A stretch of 64,000 nucleotides of DNA. Origin: Caecitellus pseudoparvulus (taxonomy: Eukaryota > Protista > Bigyra: Bicosoecida). The position numbers were made by a program, and so were the translations under genes. Below, piece after piece: positions 6,098 to 64,000 of this stretch. Position 1 is the first letter of the stretch. Each line of letters opens with the position of its first letter. The DNA lies in NCBI GenBank assembly GCA_965644315.1, contig CBFFRQ010000032.1, positions 768,682 to 832,681 on the forward strand, given 5' to 3'. The notes beneath the pieces are model-generated. The model searched no databases, was not told where the DNA came from, and saw only the letters and a list, made by a program, of their open reading frames with translations.

Positions 6098-6239
6098 TGG
6101 GCGCGCGCCCCTCCATAATGCACGCCCTGGCCACGAATCATCGCGTCAGCGCCGGCAAATCCCGGTCCACACACATCTCTGTTCCTTGCTCGCGCTGACG
6201 TGTGCACCGTTCGCCGGCCTCAAACGCGACGTTTTCAGC

Positions 6240-8508
6240 ATGGACGAGAAGCTTGCCACACGGGTGCGCACAGTCGCCAACCTGTGCATCCATGCGTGTG
6301 AGTGCAGCGCACTGTGCAGGCTCCGGCGAAGCGATTTCCGCAGCTTTCCACCACCGTAATTGCTCCCTTGCCTGGCCAACAGTGACCACCCGGGACACAG
6401 CAGCTCTCGCTGCTGTCGTCAACAAACACAAGGACATCGTCGCCAACATCGTCGACTCCAACGGCTGGACAGTGCTCATGCTGGCCTGCGACAAGGGCGG
6501 CGAGGAGAGTGTTACCGTGCTGGCCGATGCGGGACTCGGCAGCACAGCCAGCAAGGTCACCGCCAGCGGCCTTTCGGCGCTGCACATCGCCGCCCGACGA
6601 GGCCTTGTGCAGGCACTCCCTCGCCTGCTGGCGGCCCTGCCGGCAGGCGCCGCCAAGCGCCTGCTGCAGCAACCCGACGCCACTGGCCTGCTGCCACAGC
6701 AGTACGCGGCGCTGCAAGGGCACACGAGGCTGTGGCTGCTGCTGCACCAGGCGCGCGCGGGCCCGTCAGCGCCACTCCACCCTTCCTGCATCACAGACCT
6801 GCTGCCGTGCTTGGGCAGCATGCCCGGCATCCGCGATACGCCCCTGGCCGTGTCTCTGGCCACTATGGCGGCTCTGCAGACTGGGCCCATGGTGCCGCCT
6901 GCACAGCCGGCAGTGCTCCCGCTTGCCCTGCGCAGCCTCGTGTCCGGCAGCATGTTCAATTCGCTTGTCGTGCTGCTGGCGGTGCAGCCAGGAGCAGTCG
7001 CCGCGACGGCGGCCGGCGCTGGTGAGCTGAAGGCCCTTGCGCGCTGCCAGCTCGCCGCCGCGGCGACGGCTGCAGAGACGGCGCTGGGCCTAGGTGACGA
7101 TGGGGGGGGGGCTGGCGAGGACGGCCAGGGTGCCGCCTCCACAGCCCGGCAGCACCCGGATGTGGGCGTGCAGTGGAACCCCGCTGCCAGGGCGCTGCAG
7201 GTGAGCGTGGCGGGCCCCTCCCGCAAGCGCTTTGCACGCAAGGACGTCAGCGGTATCCTGGACGCCCTGTGGGCCGAGGCGGCACGGGTGCAGGCGCACC
7301 GCCCCAGCCCGGCCACTGCCCCACCCCCCGCCCCGGCGGGCATCGAAGTGCCGCTGCCGCCAGCCAAACCCGCTGTGTCGCTGCCACCGCCCACACGTCA
7401 GCCCTGGACGCATCGCCTGGCTGATGGTGTTCCAGGTGCTGCCGATGTGGAGAGGGCACTGGCGCCGGTGGATGGCCCTCTGCAGGCTGCCGCCCCTGTG
7501 CAGCCCACACAGGGGCGCAGTGCCTGGGAGAGCGCTGTGGAGGGAGCCCTGGCGTGGATGCAGCAGGGACACAGTGCCATGTCTGTAGGCGGGGGCAGTG
7601 CACCGACCCTGCCGCCCCTGCTGCAGCACCAGGACGGCGATGGACTGCGAGCCCTGGCCCAGTGCAGTGAGGCGTCTGCTGCTGCAGCTGGTGGGGACAC
7701 AGATGCCGCCGATGCGTCCGCTACGCAAGGCCTGCAAGACCCCAGCTGGTACCTGGCTGGGCACGCCTGGGCGGCAGCGGCAGTGGTGTTGCTGCTGGAG
7801 CGGGCAGAGGCGCTGGGTCACCGGGAAGCGTCCGAGTCAGCCGACGCTGCCGCTGCTGCCCTGCTGCAAGGCGAGGCAGGCCCTGCCGCGGCCAGTGGGC
7901 CCAGTGTGACCCAGCGTGCGGGGGCTGTGTCGGAGTCTGTTCCGGCGCCAGCGTCTGTTCCGGCGCCAGAGCCTGTGCGCGATGAAGCAACGGAGAGCAC
8001 CAGGACGGTAGAACCCAAAACTCCAGAGCAGGCAGTGTCTGCGCCAGGCAAGGGTGCCGCTGGAGCGAGTGGAGCACAACCAGTGCCGGCCAGCGCAGAC
8101 AAGGCAGCCGCCACACGCAGCACCAAGGCTGGCTTGAAGGGTGCGTGGGCGGCAGGGGCCCCGCCCAAGGCAGTGTCGAGGAAAGTGCCTGCACAGCGGG
8201 CGCCTGTCACCGCACCTCCCAGCAGTGGCTCTCTGCAGGCCTTGCAAGATGCCCTTGCAGAGCAGCACCCGCGTGGTGCGGCACTTGACCTGCGCGTGCG
8301 GCACGTGCTGGGCATGGGCTTGGAAAGCCTGTCTTCGGCACAGCTGGATGCGGCAGAGGAAGTTCTGTGGAGCTTGCTGCGCCGTGTGCAGCACCACAAG
8401 GTGCAGGCAGCCGCGGCACGGGAAGTGACCAAGGTGGTGGCGGAGGAAACGCACAAGAAACAGCTGCAGGAACTGCTGGCAAGCCGTGGTGGCCAGGCGC
8501 AGCAGTGA
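6240..8508 (+). CDS. Ankyrin-repeat protein with C-terminal coiled-coil/K-box-like helix
   Basis: Exon 1 MDEKLATRVRTVANLCIHA splices via intron 6298-6382 into the 768-aa ORF. Ankyrin motifs: GWTVLMLACDKG, GLSALHIAARRG, GLLPQQYAALQGH. Confidence 0.75.
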
Positions 8509-11956: not shown

Positions 11957-14900
11957 TCACTGACCTGGGGGGCTGGAGTGTGGCGCAGCTGGAGGCTGAG
12001 GCAGCTCGGAGCCCACACCAGCACGCGCTTCTGGGAGCGTGGTGGACTCCATGCTGCGTCGTGGAGGAGGCCTGGACGGCGTGGAACTCACGGAATGCTT
12101 TCGACTGCGGTCTGGCAAGGGAGGAGGGCGCTCGCCGCTGGAATTGACGCGGGCGGGCCGCACGAGGCGCTGCGGCACTGCACTTGGCAACGCAGCAGGC
12201 ACTGCCTGCTGCACAGGAGACTCTGTGGGCGTCCCTGGCACAGGCAACGCAACAACGTCCTCTGTCGGGTAGTCCACAGCAGCACAGTACTTCATGGCCC
12301 ACAGGGGCCACACAACGAGGGCTTCTGGGCGTGTTGCAGGCCACAGCGCAAACTGGCCTGGGGAAGTCGGCACGCTGGCCATGATGCCACAGGTGGCGGC
12401 AGCACAGGCGTTGAAGACGTCCATGGGCAGCGCGCCCAGCGTGCTGGGCTCGGTGGTGTCCACTGCAGGCAGTTGCTCGGCACTTGCTGCACGCACCCGG
12501 GACATTCGTGCCAGGCGGCCGACACTGGCGCGTCCACCGCCGCCACCTGCCCCGGCAGCCTCAGGGCTCTGTGCCGGCGCACCCTTGCCCAGCCCCTGTG
12601 GGTCCACCAGGGCAGCTGTCGCAGGGGAGGCGTCCCAGAGAGCAGCCAGGTACCCCCGTGTGGGCGGCGTGTCGGGCAGCATGTACCAGGGGTTGCGGAA
12701 CTCCAACGCCCGGCGAGCCATGTGACTCCACAGGCTCTCTGCGCCGCCACGAACGGCCTGGCGCCCCCCCTCGTGGTCGTGCAGGAAGGTGCCGAAGCGC
12801 CCGCTGTACGCGTGGGTGGCCATGCAAGCCAGGAACGCGCAGTTGAACTCAAAGGCCGTGGGGAACTGGCGCGCCACCTGCCACACGGCGTCCAAAAACT
12901 GCAGGAAGACGGGGGAGCGTTTCTTGTGCCCGTGTTTCTCACGGGCATTGCCACAGCCACCCCCCGTGCGCATGGCAAACTGGTGCCCGAACGAACACCA
13001 CTCCTTCTCCACCAACACGGCGAAGCCGCCCATGGTGCGGTAATACGGGTCAAGCAGCAACTGCGCCAGGGCCGTCAGCTGCGCCGTGCGGTCCCAGCCG
13101 TCGGAGCAGTGCACAAAGACAGACGCGCCTTCTGCCAGGCACCGTGCGACTCGCACACTGCCCACCAGCACAGTGGACAGCAGCTTGAGCCACGGCAGGC
13201 GTGGGGCGTTTGGCACCCCCGTGATGACATCGGCAACGTGGGGCGGCAGCGGCGGCGCCAGCGGGCTAGGCACAGGCATGAGCCCCGACATGCCGCCAGT
13301 GGGCGGCGTGAAACGCACGAGCGGGAAGTGCGCGTGCCGCCCGAAGCTGAGGGAGAAGGCAGCGGGCGCCTCGGGGACGCCCCCCCCCACCGAGGCGCCC
13401 CTGCCCCCCTCGGCACCCTGCGCCCCTGCCGCCAGCTCCGCCAGGCCCGCATCCGTCCCCGCATCCAGCGCCGCCCCCACCTCCGGTGCCGACTCGAAGA
13501 TGCCAGAGGAGGCCAGTGCACGCGTGGAGCGTCCCAGTGTGGACCGTGGCACCATGCCCGCCTGTACCAGCGCACGCCGCATCTCATCGCCGAGGCTGTC
13601 GGTGGTGACGGAGCGGGGGCGAAGGAAGGAGGGCAGGACGCGGACAGAGGCGGTGCTGGGCGAGGGGGGGGGCAGGGAAGGCGCGTGCCCCCCCCCTCCC
13701 TCCCCGCCCCCTCCACCGGCACTCCACGCCACGCCCGCCTTGGCCACGCGAGCTGCGCCGTGCAGAGCGGCTGAGGCGGCTGCGAGCAACGCACCACGCA
13801 GGCCCGCCAACGCATCACGCACGACGTGGATGTTGTCAATGCCCAGGAAGGTCAGGTCTGCGCCGCCGTACCTGGCTGCGGACTCTGACCCCCCCCCCTT
13901 GCCCATGTTGCCCAGGGCGTTCATGCGGGGCCGTGCGTCCAGGATGGCCAGACTGACGCCTTGCCCTGGCGCCTTGCCCAGCTCGATGGGACCGGACACG
14001 CTGTGCCCACCCCCCAGGCTCGCCCTGGACACAGGGCGGGCCGAGATGCTGGCCCGCCGCGAGGGGCCTGCTTGCAGCTGGGAGGCCGCCTCGGCAGCGG
14101 AGGGGGAGGAGCGCCCCGACGTGCTGCGTTTCAGAGAGTCAAAGATGGACCCTGTGGCCTTGCGCGCAGGGGGGCTGGCGTCAGGGGACGAGGGGGCAGC
14201 CGTGCCAGCGCCAGGGCCACCGCCGCCGCTGCCCTCGTCGGCACCCCCCTCTTCCTCACTCTCCCCACCAGGCAGCACCACGGCGCTGCTGCGGGCAGGC
14301 GCGGAGAAATCGTAGCCAACGTATGCCCACTGCAGCTGCGTGAAGGGCGCCAGCGACACACGCGTGAGGGGGGTGCTGGCCGCCACGTGGACACGAGCTG
14401 ACCCCCGAGGGGTCGTCACACTGGTCCACTCGCCGCCGGGGCCACCTGGGTACGAGAGCGGTGCGACGGGGGGCGTCCACCCCCCGCCCTCCCCGGCTGG
14501 TTGTGCAGCCAGCGCGCTGAGCAGGGTCTCGTCCTGCCTGTTCGTGCTGCCAAACACCCCGGACATGGGCTGGCTGGCCCGGGAGAGACTCACCCGCCCA
14601 AACGCCCACACGACGGCAGGCAGGCGGCTCTTGCTGCGGTACTTCGCAGCGCCAGCCAGCGTCTCATCGTCCACGCTGACAGGCGCGATGACCCGAGCAG
14701 GGTACGTGGGGGCCAGCGCATGCCCCGCGTTGATGTCACTCACACGCCAGTGCGCCTCACCGTCACGCATGCGACTCAACTCGTACCCCAGGTCCAGCAG
14801 CGTCCACCCATCCACGTCCCCCAGCCCGCTGCCGCTGTCCACACTCCACAACCCGCCAAGGTGCCGCAGCACTGCCAGGCGTTTGGCGCTGCCATCGGCG

Positions 14901-17101
14901 CCGTCAGCACCCCCCGGCAACGTGGCCCACAGGGTGGGGATGCAGGGCACCACAGCTCGCAACAGCGGCAGCGGCAGCTGTGCAAGCTGCAGTGGCAGCT
15001 CCACAGCTGCCGGGCGCAGGCGGTGCTGTGTGGCAAACACTGGCGCGTCCTCCCACACGTGGGCCTCCAGCGCCTGCCGCACCTGGGCCGCGACGTTCGT
15101 GCTCGGCAGCCCCAGCAGGGAGAATCGCCCTGACACGGCACGTCCAGCTGAGGTGGTGGAGGTGCCGGTTGGCCCTGCTGCGTCCCCACCGTCAACCAGC
15201 CCATACCGGTGCACGAGGTCACCGGGCAGCACCGTCGCAGCCCACGCTGCCCAGTCCGCCACCGCCACCGCAAACTCCCGATCGGAGTGGCCGCTGGCCT
15301 GGGCGCCGCCACCGCCCAGAGGGGGGCCTTGCACCTCCGCGTGCACAAAGTTAAAGACGGCGGTGGTCAGGTCTGTGCACCACACGGCCAAGACGGAGGC
15401 GTCCTGTGTGGGGGAGGGCAGCACGGAGCCGGGCGGGGCAGACGGGTCGCGGCCCCGGACCACGGCCGTGGCGCTGCTGCTCACCTCCAACTGCGCGATG
15501 CAGCGCAGGGGGATGCTGGTGACACTGGCCAGGGCAGGCGTAGACACGACGAGGGTCATGCCCGGCGGGGAGGGGCCCTCCCCGTGCCCCCCCCCTGGCA
15601 GGCTCGCAACAGGGGGTGCGCCAGTGATGTCCACAGCGAGGTCGGACGTGGAGCTGGTCCTGGCCAGGCGGGGACCGGGGGGGGTTGGCCCCGCCCCCTC
15701 CTCCCCTGCCCCTTCCCACGGCAGGCGCCGCCATGGGAAGAACCGCAAGCGGTAATTGGACACGACCAGGGTGCCAAGTCGACCTGAGGTCGTCTCCACC
15801 ACCCGTGGCACCACGAGACCCACCGTCTCACCGAACAGAGGAGGAAGTGGCGCAGGGGGCAGCAGCGTGCGAGTGACAGCCGCAATGTCAGATGGTACTA
15901 GGCCAGGGGTCGGCACGGAGGGGGGATCAACTGGCTCCACCGCCCCTCCCAGCGCCGCATCCAACTCCTCCCCCATACCTGCCTCCACGCCCACGCTGCT
16001 GCTGCGCGCCATGATCATGGGCGACCCATGGGCGGGCCCGGGCGGAATGGCCACGGAGGCGTGAGAGCCGGCCATGCCGCTGACCCCGGACACCCCGCCT
16101 GCCGCACTGGTCAGCACGCCCGGCGGTGCCAGTTCCGCAACACCCGCCGCAGCGGAGCCTTCTTGCCACCACGCCTTACGGCGGACACGCAGGTGGGCCA
16201 CCTCCCCCTCCAGCTGCTCGAACAGGTGGCGCAAGGAGGCAGCTGATGTAGCAAAGGCCGTCAGCTGGCACATGAGCGTGTGGCTCACCAGCTCGGCAGT
16301 GGACAGGCAGGCGTCCTCCTGCGTCGCGTTCATGGCGGCGATGACGCTGTCTTGTTGTTCGCCGAACGACGCCACGGCTGCCCGGTGCGCCGACTGTGCC
16401 TCCACCAAGCGCGTCTGGTCGCTAAACTTCTTGCTCTTGGTCAGCTCCTTCACGCGGGCGGCCTTTGAATTCCGTTCTTGCAAAGCAGCATACGCGCGCA
16501 TCTTGATGTCCTTGCAATGCTTCATCTCTGCTGCCAGGCGCACCTGCACGGCATCCATGAAACTAGCTGCCAGCCGCCGCACCATTTGCTGGAAAGCTGT
16601 GTCGATGGCTCCGTGGCACGACCGGACGCCAGCGACGAAGGCATCGCTGAAAGGCGGAGATGCCTTCGTCTCCAACATAGTCTGCAGGGCGCTCTGGAAC
16701 TCCATGAGCTCAGAGTGGTATGCTGCGAAGGGCGCGGGCAGCCGGTGCGGTGCAGCACCAGCGCCAGCGGAACTTGACGAGCACCCCGACACGCCAATGG
16801 TCACCGGGTAGCACAGGCCGTTCAGCGGGTGCCCTCACCATGCGTGGCTGCGACAAACTTCTCCACTGTGCTTTCAGCTTCCTCCATAAATTTCCGCGTG
16901 TGCTTCAGCCCTGTGAAGCGCGTCGGCACGCCGTGAGGAGCAGGCTTCTCCCTCGCCACCTCCACCCCACCATGCCCACCACCCACCGTTGTTCAGCTCG
17001 TGGAACTCAGCAGACATGTCGTCGCTAGCCTCTGAACCCATCTTGTGCCGCAATGCACCCCGCCAGCTCATGCTGAAGATGCTCCCTCGCGCCTCTGCCA
17101 T
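11957..17101 (-). CDS. Myotubularin-family phosphoinositide 3-phosphatase with N-terminal BAR-like domain and PH-GRAM region
   Basis: Catalytic HCSDGWDRT at 13085-13111, plus YRSKSRLP, DARPRMNA, LVEKEWCSFGH and SPVFLQFLD; GTLVVSNYRLRF marks the GRAM region. Two upstream exons (introns 16911-16986 and 16723-16838) add an all-helical N-terminus of about 250 aa. Confidence 0.92.
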
Positions 17102-17616
17102 CCTGCAGTTGCCCTGCTCACAGCGTGCTGCCAAAGCCCAACCCTCGCTGAATGCACTGCACCTGCTGCAGCAAGAGCCGGCTTACACCGCGGAATGGGA
17201 GAGAAAGTGGACCAGCAGCAATGCGCTGGCGCTATCCGACATGAATGGTTTGGATTTTATTTGTGGGTGTGCCCAGCGGCGGCACGGTGGGCGGGCTCAT
17301 GCTCCAAATCTGACGCTGCAGCGTTTCAGCGACTGCATTGAGCGATGCAGGCCTGCCACCGCAGCGGATCTAACTGCTTCAAATCCCATAGCGTCGCACT
17401 CAAACCCTCCCAGACTTCTCTTGGGCTTCGTATCTTGCCCTGGGCAACGCCTGGTTGGCTCAGCCGCCTGCCAGCCGGCGCAAGTGGCTGCGCACGGCTT
17501 TGCGTTTCGTTTGAGCACTAAAGGCGCAACGCGCCAATCTGCGGGCCGCATTGCGTCTTTCCTGGGCCCAACGCCGGAATTCACGCAAGAAATAATCAAA
17601 TCACTCCCAAGGAAGC

Positions 17617-20600
17617 ATGGCTGGCCGCTCACAAAGCTTGCACGGCGCTGGGATGGGTGTTGGAAGTGACTCAGAGGAAGCGAGCGCTGCGCACCAGCTT
17701 CCGCCAGCTTTTCAGTGCCTGGCGGAGAACCAACGCCGGCGAATTGCCGACGCAATCCGAGGCTTGGATAGGATACAAGACTCGGATTCGGCTGTCGAGT
17801 CCGCCAAGTGCGCCGCTGAGCTTGTCCAGGTGAGTTCAGCCTTCGCGAGTTGAGCTGCCAGGGTTGGCACGAGCAGCACACAACAACCCCAAAACGCTGA
17901 CCTGTTTGCAGGGCGTGATAAACGTGGAGGCCGTGCTCGTGGTTCTCAAGCCTGAGTTCGTGGAGGAATCGCATGAGGCATTGAGCGGAGCTGACGACGG
18001 GAGCGAAAGCGGCGACGATTTTCTCACGCAAGTGCTTGTACGCTGCATGAGATGTAATCTGGTGGACCTCTTTGAGGAGGGAACGCAAATTGGAAAGCTT
18101 AGGCCAGCGGGGACTAGCGAAAGCGCCTGGCAGGCGTTTCTGGAAGAGTGCCTGACCCCGCAAGTGAGGCGATTGCAGCAGAGAGCGGCGTGGGAGGCGA
18201 GGCTGAAAGCAGCTGGCATCCAGAACCTGGGTCGTCCACTTCGGGAGCTGATTCGTGCAAGCATGCAAGCCGGCAGTGCTGCATGCAGCCCTGTGCGGAA
18301 AAGGCAGTCTGGAAACGCCCAGGCGCGCACTGACGCGGAGCTTAGCGCTGTTCATGAGCGCTTTGGCTGGCTGCATGAAGCTGGAGAATGGCTCCTCACA
18401 GGCAACTTCAGCCAGTGCTGGTTCCTGCAGGTCATGCTGCGCCAAGCTGGGGCGCCGAGCGAGCCACTGCCGGCTGACAGCGTCCCCCCTCGTTGGACGC
18501 GCGGGTGCTGGCCTGTGATGCACGGTTCAAGCATAGTGGCCGTTGTTCTGTCCCTCCCTTGGATAGAAGGAATGTTTCCTGGCATAGATACATCTAATGC
18601 CAGGACGGTTTTTGTTGGACAGGAGAATCTGCGCATCAGGGGAGTGCCGATTGCGCACGGTCGTCTGCGTCACGAAGCCCTGCACAAGGGGAGCGAGCAT
18701 GTGGTCAAGTTCATCGAATTCGTCGTCACCCCAGACCGTGCCCGCTTTCTTGTGGACTCCATGGCCACGGCGAGGCAGCAGGGGCCTGGGACGATGCTGG
18801 GTGCACCAAGTGGGTACGGCAAGTCCATGTGCTGCTTGGCACTTGCGATTATTAACACAATCGGTGCAGGGGGGGACGTGCTCGCATTACCTAAAGCGGA
18901 TCTGCTGGCAGGTGGCGTCACAGCCGCAGAGCTGTGCGACTCTCTGGTCGCACCAATGCTGCGCCTCTCATGCGGTCCAGCGCTTGAAGACGCAAAACTT
19001 CACACTCACCTTCATAACATCTGCCAAGGCCAAGACGCAGAAACAGCGATGTGTAAGTTGTTCGACGCTGAGACTGGCTTCTTGAGGCAGTCCACGCGCT
19101 CCCCTGACCCAGTGACTCGCTTGATCATCCTTGACAATGTTCAAGATTTGCATTACAAGTTGGCGAACAAAAATCAGGCGAGCTTGTCTCCTCGCTGGAG
19201 CATGGCCAAAGCCCTGCTCTCAGAAAAGAACTCAGCTGGTACGGTCCTTGCCTACGGCCCCGACGTTCAAGGTCTTGCTCGTCTTGATGGCAGTGACACA
19301 GCAACGAGCCCCGAGGACGCTGTCAAGGCAGGGGAGAAGAGGATTGTTGTCAGGCTTGAAGGGTTCTCGACCAGCGAAGCCCTTGCCCTCACGCTTCGTG
19401 CGCCAGATGCGCAGCCTGTTGTCGATGCTGCGACTGCTGCTGGGGAGGCGTGCGACCAGGATGCGCAGGGACTTGGCGAGCCAGTCCCCTTTCTACAACT
19501 GCCACAGGCCGTACACACGCTCGCCACAAGAAGTGAAGTGAGCCAGCAATGCCTTTCTGCATTTGTGGAGCGCACGGGTGGATCGGTTGCGGCCCTGCAA
19601 TCTGCATTGGTGGCACTGAACGCTGGCCAAGTGCAGGACCACGGCAGGCTTCACGAGACACTGGTGCATTCGTTACAGGACTGGTTCACTCGGGAAAGGT
19701 GCTGGCTACAGGAGCGCATCAGGCACTCGCTGGGTCCCGACAAGAGAGACTTGCTGGAGGAGCAACTCAAGTGCGCCAAAGAGCTGCTTGCTTCCACTCA
19801 GGGTGGTTCCGAGTCGACTTCCATCTTCCCAAGGTGTGCACTTGAACATGTCCAGAGAGCCGCTCTTGCCTTCCTTGGTGTGATCAACGAGCGCGAGCAC
19901 TTTGCCAACAAAGACACTCCAGGGGCCAGGGTGCTTCAACTGAGCCCTGCAGCGGCCTCAATCCCCGAGGTTGTGGAAAAGCAGGTCGTAGCACTGGTTC
20001 ACATGGGCCTGCTCGGCAGAAACTTCATCCCAATGTCCAGTGCAGCAGGCCCACCTCCGACTCACCTTCTGTCGAATGGCCAGCTGTCGACAGAGTGGGC
20101 AGCTCCACAGAGCGCTGCGTCCTCAGCGGTGCAGGAAAAGTTGCACTTCACTCAGGCCTTGATCGCGAAAGTGCATACCCTGAAGCCAGGCGAAAAGCTG
20201 GTCATTCACACCTCCCACTCGTTCCCAAGGCTTGACTGCCTCACGATTGTGCGAAATGGCATAGCAGATGTGTACCATTTGGAGTGTTCTATTGAGGAGG
20301 TGACAGTGGGGCGTCTGAGTGTCCATCCAAAACGCAAAGAAGTTGATTTCCTTCAAGGCGAAGGACTCCCAGACGGCACGCTCCCAGTCGCACCAACAGG
20401 TGCTGCCAAGGACTTGGCACTGCTCATTGCCGACAAGAAGTGGTACTGGGAGGAAACGGGGGACGGCTCGGTCTTGCTCAAGTGCATCAACAAGAGCAAC
20501 CCTTCAACGGGACCTCGGCCCGAGGAGTGCACCTCTTTCGCCACGGCCGCCTTACAGGGTCTTGGCCTTCCCGTCGTCGTGAACGGCTTCATGCGCCAAG

Positions 20601-20974
20601 GAGACGACGGGCGTCAAGTTCTCAGCATGAAGGTGGAGCCACCACCCGAAGACGTGGCCGCAGAGCTCAGAAGGCGTGTGGGCGAAGCACTTCCCCAGGC
20701 CTCAGACGAGGAGCAAAGTGGAAGATTAGCCTTCTCCGGCGACGGGTTTGGCCTGTACTTTGTCTACTGCTCACTTGCAGGAGACTCTGTGAGAGACGCT
20801 GAGCCGGCGCAACGTCAGACCGATGTTCAGGGTTACTTTGCTCTGGTCGGCCCTGACTGCATGGCAGGCTCCACCAGCAGCCTGCTCCCTGACGGGACTG
20901 CTGCCGCTGCTGCCGCTGCGCAGCCTGGTAGTCACCGGGCAAGTGAAGGCAGGGAGAGCGATGAGGACGAATGA
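17617..20974 (+). CDS. Gene A: Crinkler/RHS-like protein with a helical header domain, P-loop (AAA+/STAND-like) NTPase and PD-(D/E)xK restriction-endonuclease-fold domain; about 1090 aa, 1 intron
   Basis: Exon 17617-17829, intron 17830-17911, exon 17912-20974. Walker A GAPSGYGKS (18800-18826), Walker B LIILDN (19121-19138), VRLEGFSTSEALAL and ERTGGS. C-terminal SFPRLDCL...EEVTVG...H (20219-20326) resembles the Crinkler/RHS REase motif. Confidence 0.7.
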
Positions 20975-21340
20975 AAGGCTCCAGCCAAAGCCACACTTGC
21001 CACCCTTGCTCGCACTCTTCAAGCAAGTGACACGGGGGCCTCTGCCTCTGCCCCATGCCCTTGCAACGCAATCCATGGCAACTCCTCATGAAAGTGAACC
21101 CTGTCCCAGCACTTTCCCATGGCAGCGAGATGCAGCACTGCAGTGAGTAGGTCGCCAGGTCACTCACACCCCCCAACACTTCCATACGTGGCCCGCCTTC
21201 TCCCCACGCGCGGTGGACTCCGTTGCACGGCAAGGCAGGGCTGCCGCGTGTGGCTTTGCAGTGGCGAGGCTGAGTCACACTCAAAGCACCAGCACAGCAC
21301 CAGAGCCGGGCGAACGCTACCCCAAACCCAGTCTGCAGGC

Positions 21341-23712
21341 CTAGTGGCCCCTAGTCCACTTCCCAGGCACAGGCATGCACTGCCGTGTCCCCGATGGCTG
21401 TGTCCGCGTGACCTCGCTCCCTTTCGTCAGCTGTGCCAGCATCTTGGTGAGCTCCTCCCAACACTCAGCCTGCGACTCGTCCTTGGATCCGATACGCGTC
21501 GTGGACAGCTCAACAGGCTCTACAGGGTCATATGGCTCCACAAACGCGCCATGCTGCAGCTTCTCAAGCAGCACAGGCGGGCGATGCACCACGCAGCTGG
21601 CAAAGAAGTTGGCCAGCGCACTCAACGCTGTTCCGTTGCTTTCCGGACTTCCCAGAAGCTTGTGCGACAGCTTCAAGACATCCGGACTCAACATCAGTAC
21701 CACTGTCTGCATCTTGAAATTGCGGTATGAGCAGCGGCAAGGCCCCTTCGTGCGCATTTCTTTCGCAGTCCACCAGCCGCAGCTGCAGAACCTGGTGGCC
21801 CGTCGGTCAGCTTCACACAACACCATAAGTGCAAACCTCGCCGCCAACACGGCACTCGTAGAGCACCCATTTTCCTCCGCAGCTGTCAAGGCATTCTGGA
21901 TCTGCTGCTCCTCCGCCCCGTGCAGGTACTGCATGGCATCATTGAAGCCGGTCCGCACCGCCTCGCTCAACTCCACCAAGCGGGCGGCGGCCAGTGCTCG
22001 CTCTACAGCGGGCCTCAGGCTCTGTGCCAGGAACGTCTGCCAGCCAACCTCATCTGACAGGCTCTTGGGCCGAGCCACCCAGTCGCGAACGAGAAAGTGT
22101 AGGAAGCGTCTGGGTGGAATGACCACAGCATGTCGCAGGAAGTCCCACAGCAGGCCGGAGGTCGTCTCAGGCCCCGCAGAGCCATCCAGCAGCACGAAAG
22201 CCGCCTTCACGACATCGGGGTCTAGCAGTGCCAGCATTGTCTCGATGACCGCGTTTTCCTGCGCACACGAGCACACGTACACGGTGCAGGCGACTCTCGC
22301 TACGCATCTGGTTTGCACTTTCACTCACCCCTGCCTGCATCAGGGCGCACTTGGCTGCCTGCACGGCTGGCTCAGGACACTCGCTGCGCTCCAGGTCCGC
22401 AATGGCTGCCTCGATCCGACCTGCTGCATCATCGAAGCGTTCCAGAAAGGCTGGGAAGTCACGCTCCGCAGCTTGCTCCATGTACTTGCGTCGGATGAAG
22501 GACAGCGCCTTCCAAGACTCAGGTGTCATGCTATTGGTCAAGTAGGACTCCCATGCGCTCTTGGTCAGCTCCTGTAGAGGCACAAGCCACTCTCCTCGCT
22601 GGCTCGCCAATAGCTTTGATGGACCAGCACTTATGCACTTGCCCAGGAGGTATCCGAAGCTCCATACCATCTTCGGATCATTTCCAGCTTCGCTCACCAG
22701 TGCATGCGCGCGCTTGATGACGTCAGGGCGCAGTACCAGCTGCACCATTTCGTGCAAGGACCGCTTCTGCGCCGGCACACAGACGAGCACGTGAGGAGGG
22801 AGGCAGTTCGAGTGCGCAGCGGCACTCCACTCACACAAAGCCACACCACCGCATGCTTCGCTGCCAGCACCGCTTGTTCGTCACACTCGCTCTCTTTCAG
22901 TTTTTGAATGGCACGATTGATGCAGTCTGCTAGCTCAGCATTCAGTTTTGCGATCCTCTCGTCAAACCTCTTTTCGACCCTTCGCTGAATGTGAGCCAGC
23001 TGCCTGGCCTCCTCCTCCTTGACCTGCTGTCGGAGTGCAGCCGCCAACTGGCCAAGAACCTCGGCTGCCTCACCACTTCCTTGCCCTTTCAAGGACCCTG
23101 TGCCGCCTGCCTCTAGCTCCCCCAGCAGCTTCTGCGCACTGCACCCCAAGGTGCTCCACAGGAAGCTGGCCAAATCAAGACCAGGGTGCCCTGATGGTCC
23201 TCGCATCGGACAACACTCGTACAAGCGTGACAGCATGCTTGGCTCAAGCAGAGCGGAGAGGGTAACCAGGTCTGGCACGGTCTGTGGGCGCAGCATGGGA
23301 TACGCAGATCAGGTACGACGCCAGCCCCTGGTGGTGCACGGCTTGACTCACCTGGCAACCTGCATATGCAGACATGGCGATGAAAACAGCTGCCCTGTCG
23401 ACATCACTTGCGGCGAGGCTTGAGAGCAGGTCCACAGTGTGATCGCGCGCCTCACGAGTCAACGTCCCGCGCGAAACCCAGTCTGCTGCCCGTGCCTTGG
23501 CCAATTCCTCCGCAGCCTCCGGCCAACTCCACAGTCTACGCGTCCAAAGGCATTCAACCAGCGCTGCAGGCGCAGCGCGGGTCAGGTGATGAGGCCTGGC
23601 GCACAGCCGGGGTTTGTTGCAGGCGACACTCACAGCTTTCAGATTCCGCAGACACACCACCACCCCACAAGGGAAGGGCTTGCGTGCCACCCTGCCACGC
23701 ACAGGCAAGCAT
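21341..23712 (-). CDS. Gene B: tandem-repeat helical protein made of four copies of the gene A header domain, at least 4 introns
   Basis: GT-AG introns at 23564-23633, 23282-23351, 22767-22834 and 22259-22328 join the ORF fragments in frame. Repeat consensus: I..AI..LE.SEC.E.AV.AAK.A(L/V)...|...L.LL.PDV.K.AH.LL. Start codon uncertain. Confidence 0.72.
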
Positions 23713-23962
23713 GGCGCAAGATCAAGCGACCAAGTAAAGCCAATGCACACAGAGGGAGGCAATGGACTGGGTGAGGTGTTTGGATTGTGGCCTGGCGTTG
23801 GTTATGCCGAGGCGCGAAGGCTCTGGGCTCTTGCTGGTTCCCCAAGCCCATCACGATAACAACAAGCCCACTGGGCGCCAGCGCGAGCTTCCACTGCATC
23901 AAGGCACTCATGAGTGTGCCGTTGCCAGCCGTTGTGGCACCGGGCACACCAGGCCACCTCCA

Positions 23963-24500
23963 TCAAGCCGACGCACCTGCCCGCAGCAGCACCATGGCCT
24001 GCCTGCCCAATCGACTGCTCGTGCCAGCCCATGCGGCATCCTTGGCAGGTTGCTGCACAAAGTGGTCAGCTTTGCGTCTGACCTGCTGTGGGGTGGCACG
24101 ACGGCCCGTGAGGCCAAGCAGCTCCCGCAACACACCCAGCTGTTCCTGGGCGCAAGCCTCCCAGAATGCACCCTCCTCCCGTGAATGGACGTCGACTTCA
24201 CGGTGGCCAGTCAGGCTCAGCAGCTCGCGCACCACTTCAGCGTGGCCGTGCGCACATGCCCATCTGAAGGCGAACTCCTCGTCAACGTGCACGTCCACTT
24301 CACGGTGACCGGCCAAGGCCAGCAGCTGACGCACCACGTGAAGGTGACCACGAGAGCATGCCTCGCGAAAGGCGAACTCTCCGATCGCGTGTACGTCAAC
24401 TTCGCGGTGGCCGGACAGGCTCAGCAGCTCGCGTACCACTTGAACGTGGCCGCGCGCACAGGCATCCCGGAGACCAAACACCTTCACCTCCCGCACCTGC
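23963..24500 (-). CDS. Ankyrin-repeat protein of the EVDVH..EFAFR.AC..GH..VVRELL family (5' end unclear, possibly truncated)
   Basis: About four near-identical 34-aa (102-nt) repeats such as EVDVHAIGEFAFREACSRGHLHVVRQLLALAGHR within ORF 23963-24637. No convincing proximal ATG. Confidence 0.75.
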
Positions 24501-24640
24501 AAGGAAGCCAGGCAGTTGCGGCGGCCACTCTCAAAAGCGCAGCGTTGGCAAACCTGGCACAACTGCGGCCTGGCTGAAGCATAGCGAGTGTATGCACTCC
24601 TTGGGTACAAGTCACACCCTTGCTGCATCCCCTGCATGTG

Positions 24641-40001: not shown

Positions 40002-43000
40002 TCACTCTTCCTCCTCGTCACCCTCCGCGATGGTGTCTGGGCGAGAAGTCGCCGCGTCGGTTGCGACAGCATCGGCAACCTCAGCGTCCCACATCATGAA
40101 CCCTTCGGCGTCGAAGCCAGAGGGCATGTCGTACGTTGACTCGGCGGTGTCGTTGTTGTAGTACCACACAGAGCCTTCTGCGTTGCGCATGCGGGTCCAG
40201 GAGCCCCAGGTGGCGTCATCCTCCCCGCGCTCACTGGCCAGCAGCGCTACGGAGGCCCGGCGGGCCTTCTTCTTGGGGGTGGCTCCCGGGCTGCCAGCGG
40301 CGGCGGCGCCCGCCTTGGACTCGCTTGCGGCAGGGGAGGCGCCGGGAGACGCAAAGCTGCCGCTGCGAGCCAACATGGGGTTCTTGCGGTTCACGACCGC
40401 CTCCTTGGACAAGTGCTGCGGCTCCACGCTGGCATCCTTGGAAGCCTTGCTGGCAGCCACGGCAGCGGACACCTCCTCCACGCCAGCTGGGCCGTCCTCC
40501 TCGTCCACCTTGTTCAGGCCCAGTGCGCGCTGCAGGATGGAGCGGCGCTTGCCGTTCTTGCCGCGTGTGGAGGCAGAGGCACGGCGTGCCTCCTCCTGGG
40601 AGTCCTTGAGGGCCACTACCTCCATGCTGAGCTCAGCGAGGTTGGAGTCGATGTCCTTGGCTTGCTCCCGCACCATCTCCCACTGGGCCTTGCTTGGCAC
40701 GCCGTCTGACTTGAGGATCTCGTCCAGGCGGGCGCGCTCAGCCCGCATGGTGGCGCGCATGGCCATGGGGTTCATCTGCATGCCGCCGCCCTCCAGCTCC
40801 TCGTCCAGCATGGCGGCCGCCTTCAGCTGCTTGCCGCTGGGCTTGCCCTTCTTCCCGTCAGCCTTGGACTTGGAGGCGCACATGGTCTGGCAGTTGGTGC
40901 CGCCGAAGGTCGTGTACAGCTCGAAGCCGAAGACAGTGAAGAAGTAGATCAGGGATGCGAAGATGACCATCGCCACCAGCACCGTCAGCGCCTGGCGCTG
41001 CACCTGGTAGATGGGGCTGTTGTCGTCGCCGGTCTGGAACATGATACCGGACAGGGTCACGAAGCAGCCGCACGCCAGCAGCACTGCCTCCATGGTGTTG
41101 TAGTCGAAGAGGTAGTCCTGCTGCACAGAGCCCTTGGACTTCATGACGGCCTCCATGTTGCCGTTGCCTCGCATGCGGGCCTTCTGGCGGTCATTGGCGT
41201 TGCGCAGGGCAGTCTCGTAGGCAGCCTTGATGGCCTGGTGCTTCTTGTTGCCCTCCTTCACCTTGGACTGATGGTGCAGGATGATGCCACGGCGTTCGGC
41301 CATGGACATGAACGGGTTGTGGCGCACTTGCAGGGAGAAGCAGAAGAAGAGGACGAGGAAGGCCACTGCCATCTGGAACGACGGTGTGCGGCGGAACAGG
41401 AGGGCTGTCAGGGCAATGCAGAACTTGCGGAAGATGATGGCCAGGAGCCAGTACCACTTGCCGGGCTTGAAGTGGTAGTACAGCTTGTGGTACATGAGGC
41501 GGAAGGAGTGGTGGGGGTTGGTGGACTTGATGTCCCCGATACCCATCGCGCGCAGGAGCTGGTCGGTCTTGACCTTGTCTTTGTTGCGGCTCAAGTGCCA
41601 GTACACGAACACGGGGTACGCGATGGTGTACGCGGGCAGGGCAAAGAAGAGCGCCGGGTAGAAGAAGACGTTGTGCTCTGGAGAGTAGCACTCAATGAAG
41701 TCCACCTCCAGGTACAGCTTGCCGTCACTGGGGTCTGTAGGCTGGCAGTTGAACGCGTCAAAGGTCGTGCGGGTGAGCAGCAGGTACAGGTAGTACATCA
41801 TGAGCTGCCCCATGGCGACGAGGGTAGGAGTGTGCGTGCCACGATGCTTGGCAGCCTTGTGCATGATGCGGTCAAAGGCCGTCTTAACCAGGTAAATGAG
41901 CAGCAGCATGGCGCCCAGGAACAGGGGCAGGGACTCGATGACAAACCACTTCTGGGCGTACTTCACGTCAGGGATGGCACACTCGGGCGCAGTGATGTCC
42001 AGGTTGATCTGGAAAATGGACAGAATGCGGTACAGGTCCCGCAGGAACTGGGGCCACTCCACACGAGCGTTGGCGAACATGCCCAGCACCTGGAAGTAAT
42101 CCACACCGATGGAGATGAAGGCCAGGTGCACCTTGTATCGGTTCAGGACGTACCCGACGCAGCACAGGACAACAAGGCCCACGACGAAGAGCGTGATGAA
42201 CAGCCATGCCATGTCTGGGCAGGCCACACACAGACCAGCGACGCGGTAGAACCGCTCCGCACACTGCGAGCATCGCACGCCGGTGTACTCCGGGGCGCAC
42301 TCGTTTGCACCCAAGCAAGACTCCGCCGGCTCGCACGGGACGAGGTCGAAGCAGGTGGTGTTGTAAGGGTACGGGCGCTCGGAGCGGCCGCACTCGGGGT
42401 TGCCCATCTCGGCATCCAGACTGTACCAGCCTGGGATGGACTCAGGCTCGGAGAAGTCGGTGCAAATGGAGCCGCTGGAGGCTAGGCAGGCAGCCTGGCA
42501 CTCCGCACCCTGAGGGCACGGCAGGCACTCCTCACCCAGCTGGCCGTAGAAGCCGAACTGGCAATGGTACTGCACCTTGAAAACGGTGTCCACGCGGCCA
42601 GCTGCGATGTCGTCGGCGATGTACATGCCAGGCTCCAGACCCAAGCCCTCGCTCTCCTCTTCGTCCTGCAGAACACGCGGGAAGGCAGCTCGGGACAGCT
42701 CACGGCGCCCGTCCAGGTTGCTCACGTCCACATCCACGTCTGCGCCGGAATGCACCTCGGTCAGGGACATGGAGAGCACGCCCTCGCTCAAGACACGGAT
42801 GTTCAAATGCATGAAGCCGCCCTCTGTGGCGCCCAGCAAAGCTGCCACGCCCGCGGGGTGCAGCACTCGGCCGGCGCCATCAAGGGCTGTCACGTTGCTG
42901 TTGGCATCCAGCGTGCTCTGGATGAGCGCGGCGGCAGTTGGAGAACCGACGCCGGTGCCCTGGAAGGTCACAGAGCCCATGGCGGACACGTTCGGGAAAG

Positions 43001-46000
43001 TGATGTTGCTGTACCCAGCAGCGGTGATGCTGACAACCTTGGGCCCAACAGTCGCAGGCGGCGTGTCACACTCCAACAGGTTGGAGGTGTTCAGTGACAG
43101 GCCCGTGCACTCCTGCTCTCCGATGAGCACCCGCAGAGGCAGGTCCAGAGAGGAGTGGCCGAAGTCTGCGCCCTGCAAGTGCCAGTTGCTCATACCAGTG
43201 GCGTCGGGTGTGTTGGGGCGGGAGGAACGCATGTACGGGGTGTTGAAGCTCTGCGTGGTGCTGACCGTGCCGGTGCCGTCCACATCCAGCACCAGCGGGT
43301 TGTCTCGCCCGAAACCAGGGTCCAGCTTGCAGAAGTAGTACTCGTGCGTGTAAGGCTCGGGCGTGTTGGACTTGAGCGGCGGGTCGGTGTCAAAGGGGTT
43401 CTCCCTGTGCAGGTACCACTGGCTCCACTGCGTCTCCATGTCGGATCGCCAAATGGTGCTGACATCCCGGCACGGCGCGAGGATGTCTGCGTTGTTGTCG
43501 TCCTTGGCCCCGTTCACGTTGGCCAGCACTCGCAGGCCGTCCACGTCGCCGTCTTCCTCGTCCAGCACCTTCACCACCAAGCGGGCCAAGTCTGCCACGT
43601 GTGCGTCAGCACCACCCACCCGGACGTTGTAGGAGAAGGACCCTGCAGCGCTGCTGAGCAGGCTCACCTGGTCCTCTGCAATGACGTTCTCGCGGCGGCC
43701 GAAGTTGGAGCCGAGCAGCTTCACAATGTAGCCCTTGGTGGGCCCAGTGGGGGGCTCCTGCCCCGTCACAACCGGCGGCATCACGGACACAGGCATGGGC
43801 AGCGTTACACGCTGGTTGCCGACATGCAGCACAACATTGCGAGGGGGGCCCTGCACATGCGGCGCGAGGAACTGGATGAAAGTGGAGTTGTGCGTCACCC
43901 ACACAGACCCGCGGTGCAGGGGGGCTGCCACTGCATCGCCCAGGTTGAAGGGGTCAGGGATCATGTAAGACAGGTGGCGGTCAGAGGGGGACTCCAGCAC
44001 CAACGCCTGCAGGTCACCCTGGGGCAAGCTCTCGGGCAGGAAGTTCTCGCCCGTGATGGTGACCAAGGTGCCTGCGCGAGTGGGCCACTGGGTGGGCCAC
44101 ATAGAGTGCACCAGCGGGGCGCCATAGTTGATGACGGCGGCAGGGTCGTTGGGAACAGAGTCCACTCCCACAGTCGTCACGTAGGCAACCAGTCCCTGCC
44201 CCACGCCTGGAGGCAAGAGGCAGGAAATGTTCGTGTGGTCTGTGACCAGCGTGACGGGTCCGCAGTTCACAATGCGGCTATCACCAGGAGCGCGGAACCA
44301 CACCGACAGCAGGCTTTCGTCATCGCCAAAGTTCACGCCCGTCACAAACACAACGCCACCATCCGTGCCAATCGTATCGGTGCCAGTGCTGGCTGCCTGC
44401 ACAGCGAGCACTCTGGGTTGCTCATAGCGCACATCGATGTAGTTCAGGTCGCCGGTGTAGCCACCGACACCAAAAGCCATGGTGTACACGCTGGCTGCGT
44501 TGCCAGCGGGCAGACGAAGCTGCTGGCTGGTGTGGCTGTGGGGCAGGGACACTGAGGCGGCCTTCAGGCAGATGTCACCAGGCCCGGGCGGCGTGTCACG
44601 AGGGCGCAGCAGGGCGAAGGACGTCACGCCGGAGCCAGCGCAGAAAGTGCCGCCGCTCGTGAAGCCGTCCTCGCCGAAATTGTCGCCAACAAGGGTCACG
44701 ATGCCACCAGCGGTGGGCAGGCGCACGCTGAGACGGCCAGCGGACGGGATGGTGTCCAGCGTCAAGTTCGCAGTGGACACTCCGGGGTAGTACAGACTCA
44801 CTGCGCCGTGGTCAGCCACAGAGAAAGGCGTGGACACGGTGCGAGGTGAGCCGATGGCGGCTCCCGATGCATCCACCATCATCGTCACTTGCGACACGGA
44901 GGGCTTAGCGTACAGAACTGGGCAGCCGCGCTGGTCGGTCATGCCTCCAGCCTTAATGTGCACCGTCACATCGCCACCTTGGCCCTCAGGAGGGTGGCAG
45001 CGGGTGAAGCAGATGCTCTGGCCGTCTTCCACGCCAATCACAGTCGTGGGACGGGAGTCGCTGGCATCCACCGGTGTGCACTCACGCGTGGTCTGGCTGG
45101 AAGACGCGAACGACGTGCTAGAGAAGCGGAGGGAGACAGACACATCACGGCTGCACAGCCCAGTACCAGTGATGTTGAGCACATCGCGGCCCGAGATGGG
45201 CAGCGTGTTGCCTGCTGTCTGCAGGTCCGCATCAAGCAGGCGAGCGCAGTCACCCTCGCGCAGTGCTGGTGCGATGTCGCGGAACAGGACGCTGCCCACC
45301 TGGTTGCCGATGGTCACTGTGAGGTTTCCCACTGGGGCTGCCGCCACCCAGAACACGACCTCAAAGGGGGTCCACTTGCGCACGCGGTCCCGGGGAATGG
45401 CGAAGCCCCAGTCTGGGTGTGCCTGGTCATAGCCAGTGTACGCAGGAAGAGAGCCCATGTAGTTGTTGTCGCGGTCAGTGCCCGGAGGTGGGTCGTGGTC
45501 GACAAAGATCTGCCCGCACAGCTCCAGGGGGCTGCTGGTTGACCGTGGCACAGAGAGACGGGGTGCGGAGTCACCACTCTCGATCGTGGCGCCGGCCAGG
45601 CCGGGAGGGGGCTGGCAGAAAGCGCCCGTGCCAGATCGCAGAGTGATCTCCAGCTGGCCAGGAGCAGTCTTGTTCGTGGACAGAGAGAAGTCAAAGCGGG
45701 TGAAGTCCGGAGCAGCGTAGGCAAAGGTCAAGTCGTTGGAGTACTTGGGCAGCGACAGCAGGTTCGACACACGCACAATGAGCCGGTGGCCGGAGCCATG
45801 GCCGCCTGGCTTTACAAACTCAATGACCTCCTTGTCCTCGGCGGCGTCATACCACATGTCGCTGGGGGGGATTTCCAGATCCCCGAACAGCACCGTGTGG
45901 TTCGCAAACTCGTCCAGGATGCCGAAGCCGCTTCCGACGATGCGGATGATCTCGCCGTCCGCAGCCGTTGAGCGCAGAGGGGCTGTGCCAGTGATGGTGC

Positions 46001-63553: not shown

Positions 63554-64000
63554 ATGGCTGACAACAGCACTGCAGGGTCGTGGCTGGGTGACTGGCGGGC
63601 GGCTTGTGAAGTCCAGGGTGTGGATTGGCTGCTGGCGCTGCTGCATGCTGGCTCTTCTGGTGCCCAGTGCGGCATGGCGTCGCTGGCGCCGTCTGACATT
63701 GCCGAGGCAGCGCGTGTGGCTTGCTCGGAGCAGGCCATGCAACTGTTGCGTGAGCTGCTGGCAATCACTGCAAGCCGGGGCCTTGACATGGAGAGTACCT
63801 TTGGGGGTGCCTTTCGGACTGCGTGTGAGAGAGGCCGTGCAGACATCGTGCGTGAGTTGCTGAAGGTGGGAGGCGACAACAGCATCGATGCAAATGTGGA
63901 CGGGGGGTTTGGTCTCCGGGCTGCCTGCGCCAACGGCCACTTGGAGGTGGTGCACGAACTGCTGGCATTGGCAGGCGAAAGGGAAGTGGATGTCCATGCA
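63554..64000 (+). CDS. Ankyrin-repeat protein, same family as 23963-24500 (runs off the window)
   Basis: Manual translation MADNSTAGSW...GAFRTACERGRADIVRELLKVGGDNSIDANVDGGFGLRAACANGHLEVVHELLALAGEREVDVHA is open to the window end. Confidence 0.8.
   Translation, partial: MADNSTAGSWLGDWRAACEVQGVDWLLALLHAGSSGAQCGMASLAPSDIAEAARVACSEQAMQLLRELLAITASRGLDMESTFGGAFRTACERGRADIVRELLKVGGDNSIDANVDGGFGLRAACANGHLEVVHELLALAGEREVDVHA

Follow-up and report, generated by a model that had tools for sequence, protein, structure and literature searches.

The 64-kb stretch of DNA analysed here (the window; positions 768,682-832,681 of contig CBFFRQ010000032.1 of Caecitellus pseudoparvulus) encodes two convergent genes, here named gene A and gene B, that share a sequence unit of about 145 residues. 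Gene A has the Crinkler-type layout of header, nucleoside triphosphatase (NTPase) and nuclease fold, with a header that is new and all-helical. Gene B carries the same unit in four tandem copies and lacks any recognisable enzymatic domain. By profile and shuffle statistics, the A header and the B units are homologous. As the header is the sole part that the two proteins share, and as the pairing has outlived old duplications, the reading tentatively preferred is that B-type arrays associate with A-type proteins through the header and regulate an NTP-gated, nuclease-like effector. The arrays would scaffold, sequester or mimic clustered A-type N-termini through header contact, and the B-type protein would then control A as a scaffold, decoy or antidote. 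The setting would be one of conflict, whether anti-viral, self/non-self or selfish toxin-antidote. A and B plausibly form a two-gene module.

The genome searched comprises 30.6 Mb in 215 contigs, which are referred to by number (C26, C65 and so on); the window lies on C32. Searches, folding and complex prediction used single exons or intron-free open reading frames (ORFs). The N- and C-parts of each unit were joined for the pairwise shuffle statistic, and the exons of gene A were joined for the motif scan.

One header unit is found in gene A and four in gene B (units 0-3), with a period of 146-149 residues. The original prediction had aligned the A header with the B repeats by eye, and this match is borne out. 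In Smith-Waterman comparisons against 300 shuffles, the A unit matches B unit 2 with a Z-score of 16.6 and B unit 1 with a Z-score of 9.6, and B units 1, 2 and 3 match one another with Z-scores of 11-19. Unit 0, and unit 3 when compared with A, are weak by this measure (Z 1.3-3.5), but the family hidden Markov model (HMM) of the header C-part, hdrC, still recognises both (unit 0 E-value: 7e-18, unit 3 E-value: 5e-19). Family HMMs built without A match gene A in both the C-part (E-value: 3.4e-17) and the N-part (E-value: 1.7e-13). An HMM based on the four B units only and run against the six-frame translation of the window finds elsewhere only gene A, in register (E-value: 7.6e-5). All five units have a phase-0 intron at the identical position, 10 residues past an AAK motif. 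Because the HMM matches, the shuffle statistics and the shared intron position agree, the homology of the five units can be regarded as secure.

Gene models and the header unit

The features of the two genes, in window coordinates, are as follows.

17617-20974, plus strand: gene A, with exon 1 (17617-17829), an intron and exon 2 (17912-20974); predicted spliced protein of 1091 residues
17617-17829, plus strand: gene A exon 1, with its ATG at 17617 and a GTGAGT donor
17710-17826, plus strand: header N-part of gene A (two helices), matched by the hdrN HMM built without A (E-value: 1.7e-13)
17830-17911, plus strand: gene A intron (82 nt, phase 0, GTGAGT...CAG), at the same position in the unit as the B introns
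17915-18199, plus strand: header C-part of gene A, within the start of exon 2 (17912-18220), matched by the hdrC HMM built without A (E-value: 3.4e-17)
17912-20974, plus strand: gene A exon 2, one ORF of 1020 codons
18329-18829, plus strand: 'pre' domain of gene A, with the family-conserved motifs FGWL..., WSxGCRPV... and AVVLRLP (module HMM E-value: 8.6e-61)
18710-19399, plus strand: predicted P-loop NTPase of gene A, with Walker A APSGYGKS (18800-18826) and Walker B RLIILDN (19118-19144)
19406-20119, plus strand: 'mid' region of gene A (module HMM E-value: 1.3e-78; ratio of non-synonymous to synonymous substitution rates [dN/dS] 0.16)
19967-20905, plus strand: C-terminal alpha/beta domain of gene A, PD-(D/E)xK-like fold in an AlphaFold2 model
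20975-21340, no strand: spacer of about 0.37 kb between the convergent stop codons of A and B
21341 to about 23657, minus strand: gene B, four header units, convergent with gene A
23352-23657, minus strand: first recognised exon of gene B, holding the divergent N-part of unit 0 (0 differences in 306 nt from the C65 copy)
22835-23281, minus strand: gene B exon 2, C-part of unit 0 and N-part of unit 1
22329-22766, minus strand: gene B exon 3, C-part of unit 1 and N-part of unit 2 (90% identical to the C65 copy)
21341-22258, minus strand: last ORF of gene B, with the C-part of unit 2 (21956-22249), the N-part of unit 3 (21815-21934), an insert (21707-21814), the C-part of unit 3 (21398-21721), a tail and the stop codon

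The model of gene A is simple. Paralogues that lack introns align with exon 2 over its whole length, so that a further intron is not to be expected. A second strain is represented by metagenome contig L040, which is collinear with window 13695-21475 at 98.6% identity; the gene A intron differs from it at one position in 82 nt. The second strain also has a 217-bp deletion relative to the window at 21053-21269, in the spacer between A and B.

Gene B was modelled with exons at about 23657-23352, 23281-22835, 22766-22329, 22258-21815 and 21706-21341 of the minus strand. Its first three introns (70, 68 and 70 nt) are all in phase 0 and have GTGAGT...CAG ends. A relative's database protein, P0026, reads from the N-part straight into the C-part at the unit junction, whereas its genomic-type sibling P0048 runs into a GTGAGT-like sequence where P0026 continues; this contrast supports the splice model. 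Gene B had been drawn as extending to 23712, a 5' end that is unsupported because the first exon has no in-frame ATG.

The 108 nt at 21707-21814 were formerly taken for a fourth intron. They are in frame, have no usable phase-compatible donor and show 0 differences from the C65 copy. Their 36-codon product is about 34% identical to the insert of the paralogues on C66 and C70, an identity that matches that of the flanking exons, and the cysteine pattern C-x9-C-x-C...W...C is kept between the C32 and C66/C70 arrays. Given the frame, the lack of a donor and the conserved product, this segment is probably coding. The C66 and C70 inserts also contain a KKRKRR stretch that resembles a nuclear localisation signal.

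Gene B had been described as free of enzymatic motifs, in agreement with the searches of Pfam, PADLOC and PHROGs, none of which gives a match. The header itself was proposed to be an unrecognised helical domain of about 140-150 residues, and this description also holds: it has no Pfam family and no fold match in the PDB or the ESM Atlas. The header was modelled by AlphaFold2 on the intron-free ORF 21344-22258 (minus strand) with a 60-row family alignment. The model is all-helical (predicted local distance difference test score [pLDDT] 77.7, predicted template modelling score [pTM] 0.72) and consists of four short helices, a 40-residue helix and two further helices, after which the pattern repeats. 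Foldseek against the PDB finds no match (best E-value: 0.5), and a shape search of the ESM Atlas gives template modelling scores of 0.31 or lower. With VIA-align, residues 88-158 or so resemble three-helix bundles (Vpx, Z 6.5, the best PDB match; Vpr, Z 5.8), and residues 5-88 and 182-287 resemble small five-helix bundles; all of these matches lie inside the stated noise range for helical proteins. An analogy with death-fold domains, which had also been drawn, finds no structural support, as the best CARD match (CED-3 CARD, Z 4.9, root-mean-square deviation 3.7 over 66 residues) lies within helical-bundle noise.

Judging by the aligned ranges, the long helix would bridge a five-helix bundle, formed by the C-part, and a three-helix bundle, formed by its own end and the next N-part. 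The exon, rather than the N+C unit, would then be the structural module, and an array would be a rod of alternating five- and three-helix bundles. A more specific model follows from this geometry, since the B array ends in a long helix with no N-part after it and the A N-part has almost no helix before it. The C-terminal long helix of B could dock the N-terminal hairpin of A in trans, a split helical joint that would hold the NTPase and nuclease on the rod and make the pair a new module of eukaryotic immunity or of the toxin-antidote type, founded on a homotypic domain not seen before. This model is distinctly doubtful. A complex prediction that combined the N-part from exon 1 of A with the beginning of its exon 2 and one full B unit scored 0.00; the partner fold was uncertain and alignments were not used, so that the result is neutral either way.

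NTPase and nuclease-like modules of gene A

The Walker A and Walker B motifs are intact in gene A, and distant relatives carry GVHGxGK[ST]. Pfam returns sub-cut-off P-loop matches only (AAA_22; AAA_16, E-value: 2e-5; nSTAND_NTPase5, E-value: 0.008). The nearest clusters of the NTPase by ESM features are AAA_22, ATPase_2, NACHT and nSTAND1, which serve as a lead only. A sequence-profile search of the PDB with gene A returns P-loop noise only, and the 'pre' domain has no Pfam or PDB match. TPR, WD40 and LRR repeats are absent from gene A, the header units being the sole repeats, and a signal peptide-like N-terminus is not seen. By position alone, the 'mid' region occupies the place of the helix-turn-helix (HTH) in Crinkler-type proteins.

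The C-terminal 313 residues of gene A were folded by AlphaFold2 with 39 family sequences, giving a confident alpha/beta model (pLDDT 87.3, pTM 0.88). The top 50 chains returned by VIA-align for this model are mostly PD-(D/E)xK nucleases (Z 3.2-5.3). N.BspD6I (Z 5.3) and FokI (Z 5.0) lead the list, which also includes AF1548, HamA, Can1/Can2, MspJI, Cap4, Card1, NucS, LlaBIII, McrC, the Avs3 nuclease domain, CdiA-CT, NgoMIV, Cfr10I, BglII and NucC. Foldseek finds nothing significant in the PDB and no match among viral structures. Although each single Z-score is low, the VIA-align list is consistent, and the modelled C-terminus is on that account assigned a PD-(D/E)xK (restriction endonuclease-like) core fold.

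The family motif of this domain is E..PxxD..ExTxS..H, which in gene A corresponds to a glutamate in helix 1, FPRLD (20222-20236) and EEVTVGRLSVH (within 20282-20326). On the model, strand 2 opens with P87-x-x-D90, and strand 3 carries E111-x-T113-x-S115, after which comes H120. P87 and D90 do not vary in the family, 37 of the 39 family sequences have E111, T113 and H120, and S115 is also conserved. The Crinkler layout of header, NTPase and restriction endonuclease (REase) put forward in the original prediction stands as regards domain order and nuclease fold, but not as regards the canonical lysine, the motif being ExT and not ExK. As the lysine is replaced by threonine, the domain is best described as a nuclease fold with a non-canonical site, and its nuclease-like activity may be altered or absent.

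Linkage, ancestry and the relation between the two genes

About 50 A-like genes are present in the genome, mostly as single ORFs of 1000-1270 codons, and the header profile gives 124 exon-level matches. Most of the A-like loci were judged from genome search tables, with the DNA sequence read for a subset. Among 1.84 billion representative proteins, the A profile matches 57 at E-values of 1e-3 or lower. Ten of these were looked up: none is a named Crinkler protein (CRN), and they are metagenomic except for a partial protein filed as 'Symbiodinium sp. KB8'. An indexed search with the header profile returns two proteins, one of which is the second strain's copy. On the evidence of these searches, both gene types belong to lineage-restricted families, of which the A-type is much expanded. 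At the loci fetched and among the database matches, the header occurs either in arrays of 2 to about 7 units alone or as 1-3 copies before the pre/NTPase/nuclease modules. No other effector domain was found fused to arrays, and the ORFs that adjoin solo arrays are ordinary (Vps54, NHL repeats) or matchless.

At 8 of the roughly 23 array loci, an A-like gene is found no more than 3 kb from the array, where 0.35 such cases would be expected by chance (binomial P of about 1e-9, or 3e-8 without C65). Convergent pairs of A-like gene and array are found on C32 (the window), at its copy on C65 and on C26, C43 and C93; on C54, C74 and C196 the array lies upstream on the same strand, 1.4-2.1 kb away. 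The linkage test alone is compatible with clustering of the family by local duplication, and a tree of the units was therefore examined. Its alignment is short and many of its forks are unresolved. In the tree, units group by array position across loci, first with first and last with last. B units 1, 2 and 3 are sister to the matching units of the C66 and C70 arrays, unit 3 grouping also, more weakly, with the last C26 unit. The unit of gene A groups with that of the A-like gene on C26, inside the group of last units. These two A-type genes are closest paralogues at 34% identity, and each faces a B-type array, so that the A-plus-array arrangement is common to two deeply diverged loci.

No other unit in the tree shares more than 29% identity with the A header, which is therefore neither a recent donor nor a recent copy of B. 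An origin of B as a recent partial copy of A was rejected on the same identity and on the kinship of the B units to the C66, C70 and C26 arrays. The pairing had been proposed to be more than one local partial duplication; it recurs at diverged loci, and the A header is no closer to the B units than to others, as that proposal would have it.

Window 17317-24469 is duplicated at C65:26951-31210 with 97% identity. This 7.2-kb segment comprises A, B and the 3' part (23963-24469) of an ankyrin-repeat ORF upstream of B. The copy on C65 has lost 2,885 bp (window 17807-20691), a deletion that joins A exon 1 to the last 95 or so codons (20692-20974), and B is intact. The environmental population contains both of the paralogous loci. 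That A was lost and B kept, here in a single event, is the order of decay expected if B were harmless or protective and A costly. The borders of the duplication have no terminal inverted or direct repeats, and mobile-element borders were rejected for this reason.

Between strains, gene A has a dN/dS of 0.27 (17 non-synonymous and 20 synonymous substitutions), with 0.14 in the nuclease-fold domain. The C32 and C65 copies of gene B both have intact frames and differ by 32 non-synonymous and 22 synonymous substitutions (dN/dS 0.48), where a ratio of about 3:1 would be neutral; the chi-square on these counts is about 7 (P of about 0.01). Exon 3 of gene B has a dN/dS of 0.72. These estimates indicate that A and B are both under purifying selection. 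Other members of the A-type family are decaying. The Walker A lysine is lost in two similar A-like genes, on C43 (L015, 248283-253430) and C95 (L022, 179245-183480), which read GAGVS and DVGIS. The gene on C43 is missing its header and the larger part of the 'pre' domain, the one on C95 ends after the middle region and carries three header units, and the copy on C87 is frameshifted.

Several observations weigh against an association of B-type arrays with A-type proteins. About 15 array loci have no A-like neighbour (two each on C30 and C66, and those on C70, C44, C62, C19 and others), and most A-like genes have neither an adjoining array nor a detectable header. Array units and A-type N-terminal units interleave in the tree, so that the arrays may be free (detached) A-type N-termini and not a dedicated partner class. 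Likewise, the A-like gene on C95 has three units that correspond one by one to those of the free C43 array. The structural Z-scores for the nuclease fold are low (5.3 at most), and the canonical (D/E)xK lysine is replaced by T113 in 37 of the 39 sequences. Finally, the dN/dS of gene B amounts to moderate constraint only.

The strongest alternative, although rather unlikely, is that the two genes are not functionally coupled: the arrays would be A-type N-termini set free by birth-and-death evolution, and their adjacency would stem from local duplication or rearrangement. A-type proteins with 2-3 N-terminal units do occur (on C93, C95 and C54), and the free C43 array that is orthologous to the C95 units stands beside an N-terminally truncated A-like gene. 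Decayed copies are common, from the lost Walker A motifs on C43 and C95 to the frameshifts on C87 and the deletion on C65, many arrays stand alone, and numerous copies are found at the ends of contigs or on small ones. However, arrays keep their frames at 38-47% identity (C32 versus C66 and C70) with dN/dS below 1, and their units are orthologous position by position. Intact frames, constraint and unit orthology point to a long-lived, array-only gene type and not to debris. Moreover, the convergent layout is found at four independent, deeply diverged loci, a recurrence that simple tandem duplication does not yield.

It is unlikely that the units are instead a recognition part comparable to the repeats of Avs proteins and of nucleotide-binding leucine-rich repeat (NLR) proteins, with the arrays serving on their own as sensors, sponges or decoys for a ligand of foreign (such as viral) origin and not touching A. 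Tandem arrays reach about 7 units (C30), as sensor repeats do, unit sequences diverge fast (as in exon 3 of gene B) and the NTPase resembles switches of the AAA_16 type and of the STAND type (signal transduction ATPases with numerous domains). The single unit of gene A would nevertheless be a thin sensor, and the preferred adjacency would be left unexplained.

A selfish pair, in which A is a nuclease-type toxin and B its antidote through the header, and which persists or spreads by post-segregational or meiotic killing, is more improbable again. The tight convergent linkage would fit, as would the copying of a segment with exactly A and B to C65 as a unit, the loss there of the putative toxin with B kept, and the high copy number with many copies decaying. 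Signatures of mobility are absent, however, with no terminal repeats at the duplication borders, and so is the catalytic lysine. Very improbable is the view that A-like proteins are Crinkler-like effectors delivered against prey or competitors, with the header as a trafficking module and B as a trafficking or chaperone factor: the layout is that of Crinkler-type effectors, in which the header is believed to serve delivery (PMC5289972), and the host is a stramenopile like the oomycetes, but the header is not ubiquitin-like, Pfam scans give no Crinkler family, the N-terminus has no signal peptide-like sequence, no named CRN is among the profile matches looked up and the nearest named relatives are free-living bacterivores. 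Association of B-type arrays with A-type proteins through the header is accordingly kept as the preferred, if tentative, reading.

The genomic surroundings of the pair are those of an ordinary eukaryotic locus. The window region has a guanine-cytosine content of 59-71%, typical genes here have short, sparse introns with GTGAGT...CAG ends, and the flanking genes encode a myotubularin-like phosphatase, Sec24 and an anoctamin-like channel. This Sec24 shares 52% identity with the Cafeteria roenbergensis protein and about 50% with its oomycete and ochrophyte counterparts, and metagenome proteins come closer, at 77% and 57%. These identities place the organism among the stramenopiles, with no close named relative, probably as a heterotrophic flagellate. 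A single ORF of 4,705 codons occupies window 40002-54119 (minus strand). Ankyrin-type-repeat ORFs with a recurring GH..VVRELL...G.REVDVH motif lie at window 23963-24637 (minus strand), 6202-8505 (plus strand) and 63800-64000 (plus strand). One ankyrin-repeat ORF lies immediately upstream of gene B and is read from the same strand; its match to the HMM of the header C-part is weak (E-value: 0.006) and probably due to chance.

Elsewhere in the genome, the longest arrays are at C30:197562-201005 and 336233-339692 (L036/L037), inverted and near-identical, with about 7 units each and no A-like gene on the contig. A-like genes and arrays, as read from the search tables, appear over-represented on small contigs and in the first tens of kb of contigs (C66:1-3731, C93:1-7666, C104:279-2708, C74, C87, C70, C97), which suggests that the family sits in repeat-rich or subtelomere-like regions. 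No telomere repeats are found in the window.

Comparison with known systems

Proteins that combine header, NTPase and nuclease are mainly known from plant-pathogenic oomycetes, as their Crinkler effectors, and this locus bears on the role of such proteins in free-living protists. If A and B interact, the pair would be a tractable eukaryotic case of a domain-only partner that controls an NTP-gated, nuclease-like effector. It would parallel the logic of NLR/decoy and toxin-antidote systems and would assign a role to a new helical repeat fold. Without such an interaction, the locus is still a clean example of birth-and-death evolution in a conflict-type gene family. To our knowledge, header-only tandem-array genes linked to enzyme genes are not part of the description of Crinkler-type (CR) proteins.

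As summarised from Zhang et al. 2016 in PMC5289972, the commonest Crinkler-type C-termini belong to proteins with the order header, P-loop NTPase, HTH and REase; helical headers are reported there for some CR proteins. Gene A likewise has a non-enzymatic header, a P-loop NTPase, a middle region and an REase fold. Both groups have undergone lineage-specific expansion, both lack a signal peptide and both have stramenopile hosts, those of the Crinklers being oomycetes. In contrast to the classical oomycete CRN, the header of gene A is an all-helical, repeatable unit and not a ubiquitin-like LxLFLAK domain. Gene A also matches neither the Pfam Crinkler family nor, among the hits looked up, a named CRN, and its motif is ExT and not ExK.

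In fungal NLR-effector pairs of the HET-S/NWD2 type, a 21-residue amyloid motif is shared and the neighbouring gene carries a pore-forming effector (PMC3321046, PMC4344463). Here too an NTPase gene has a neighbour with one homologous region, and the pairing is recurrent; in the fungal pairs this region is thought to pass a signal. The two cases differ in that the part shared by A and B is a unit of about 145 residues, folded and helical in the model, and in that the nuclease-like effector is on the NTPase protein and none is on the neighbour.

CARD-only and PYD-only proteins of animals are small decoys that contain nothing but the homotypic interaction domain of a larger signalling protein, and their genes often lie nearby. 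Gene B is likewise header-only, but it is a four-unit array and its fold is not demonstrably a death fold.

Gene A and gene B have no sequence match among PADLOC models. Compared with the prokaryotic systems McrBC, Hachiman (HamA/HamB) and Avs, gene A is eukaryotic, with an intron, and has another domain order, a helical header and a non-canonical active site. It resembles them in the combination of an NTP-dependent switch with a PD-(D/E)xK-fold effector, and HamA, McrC and Avs3 are all among the structural matches of its C-terminal model.

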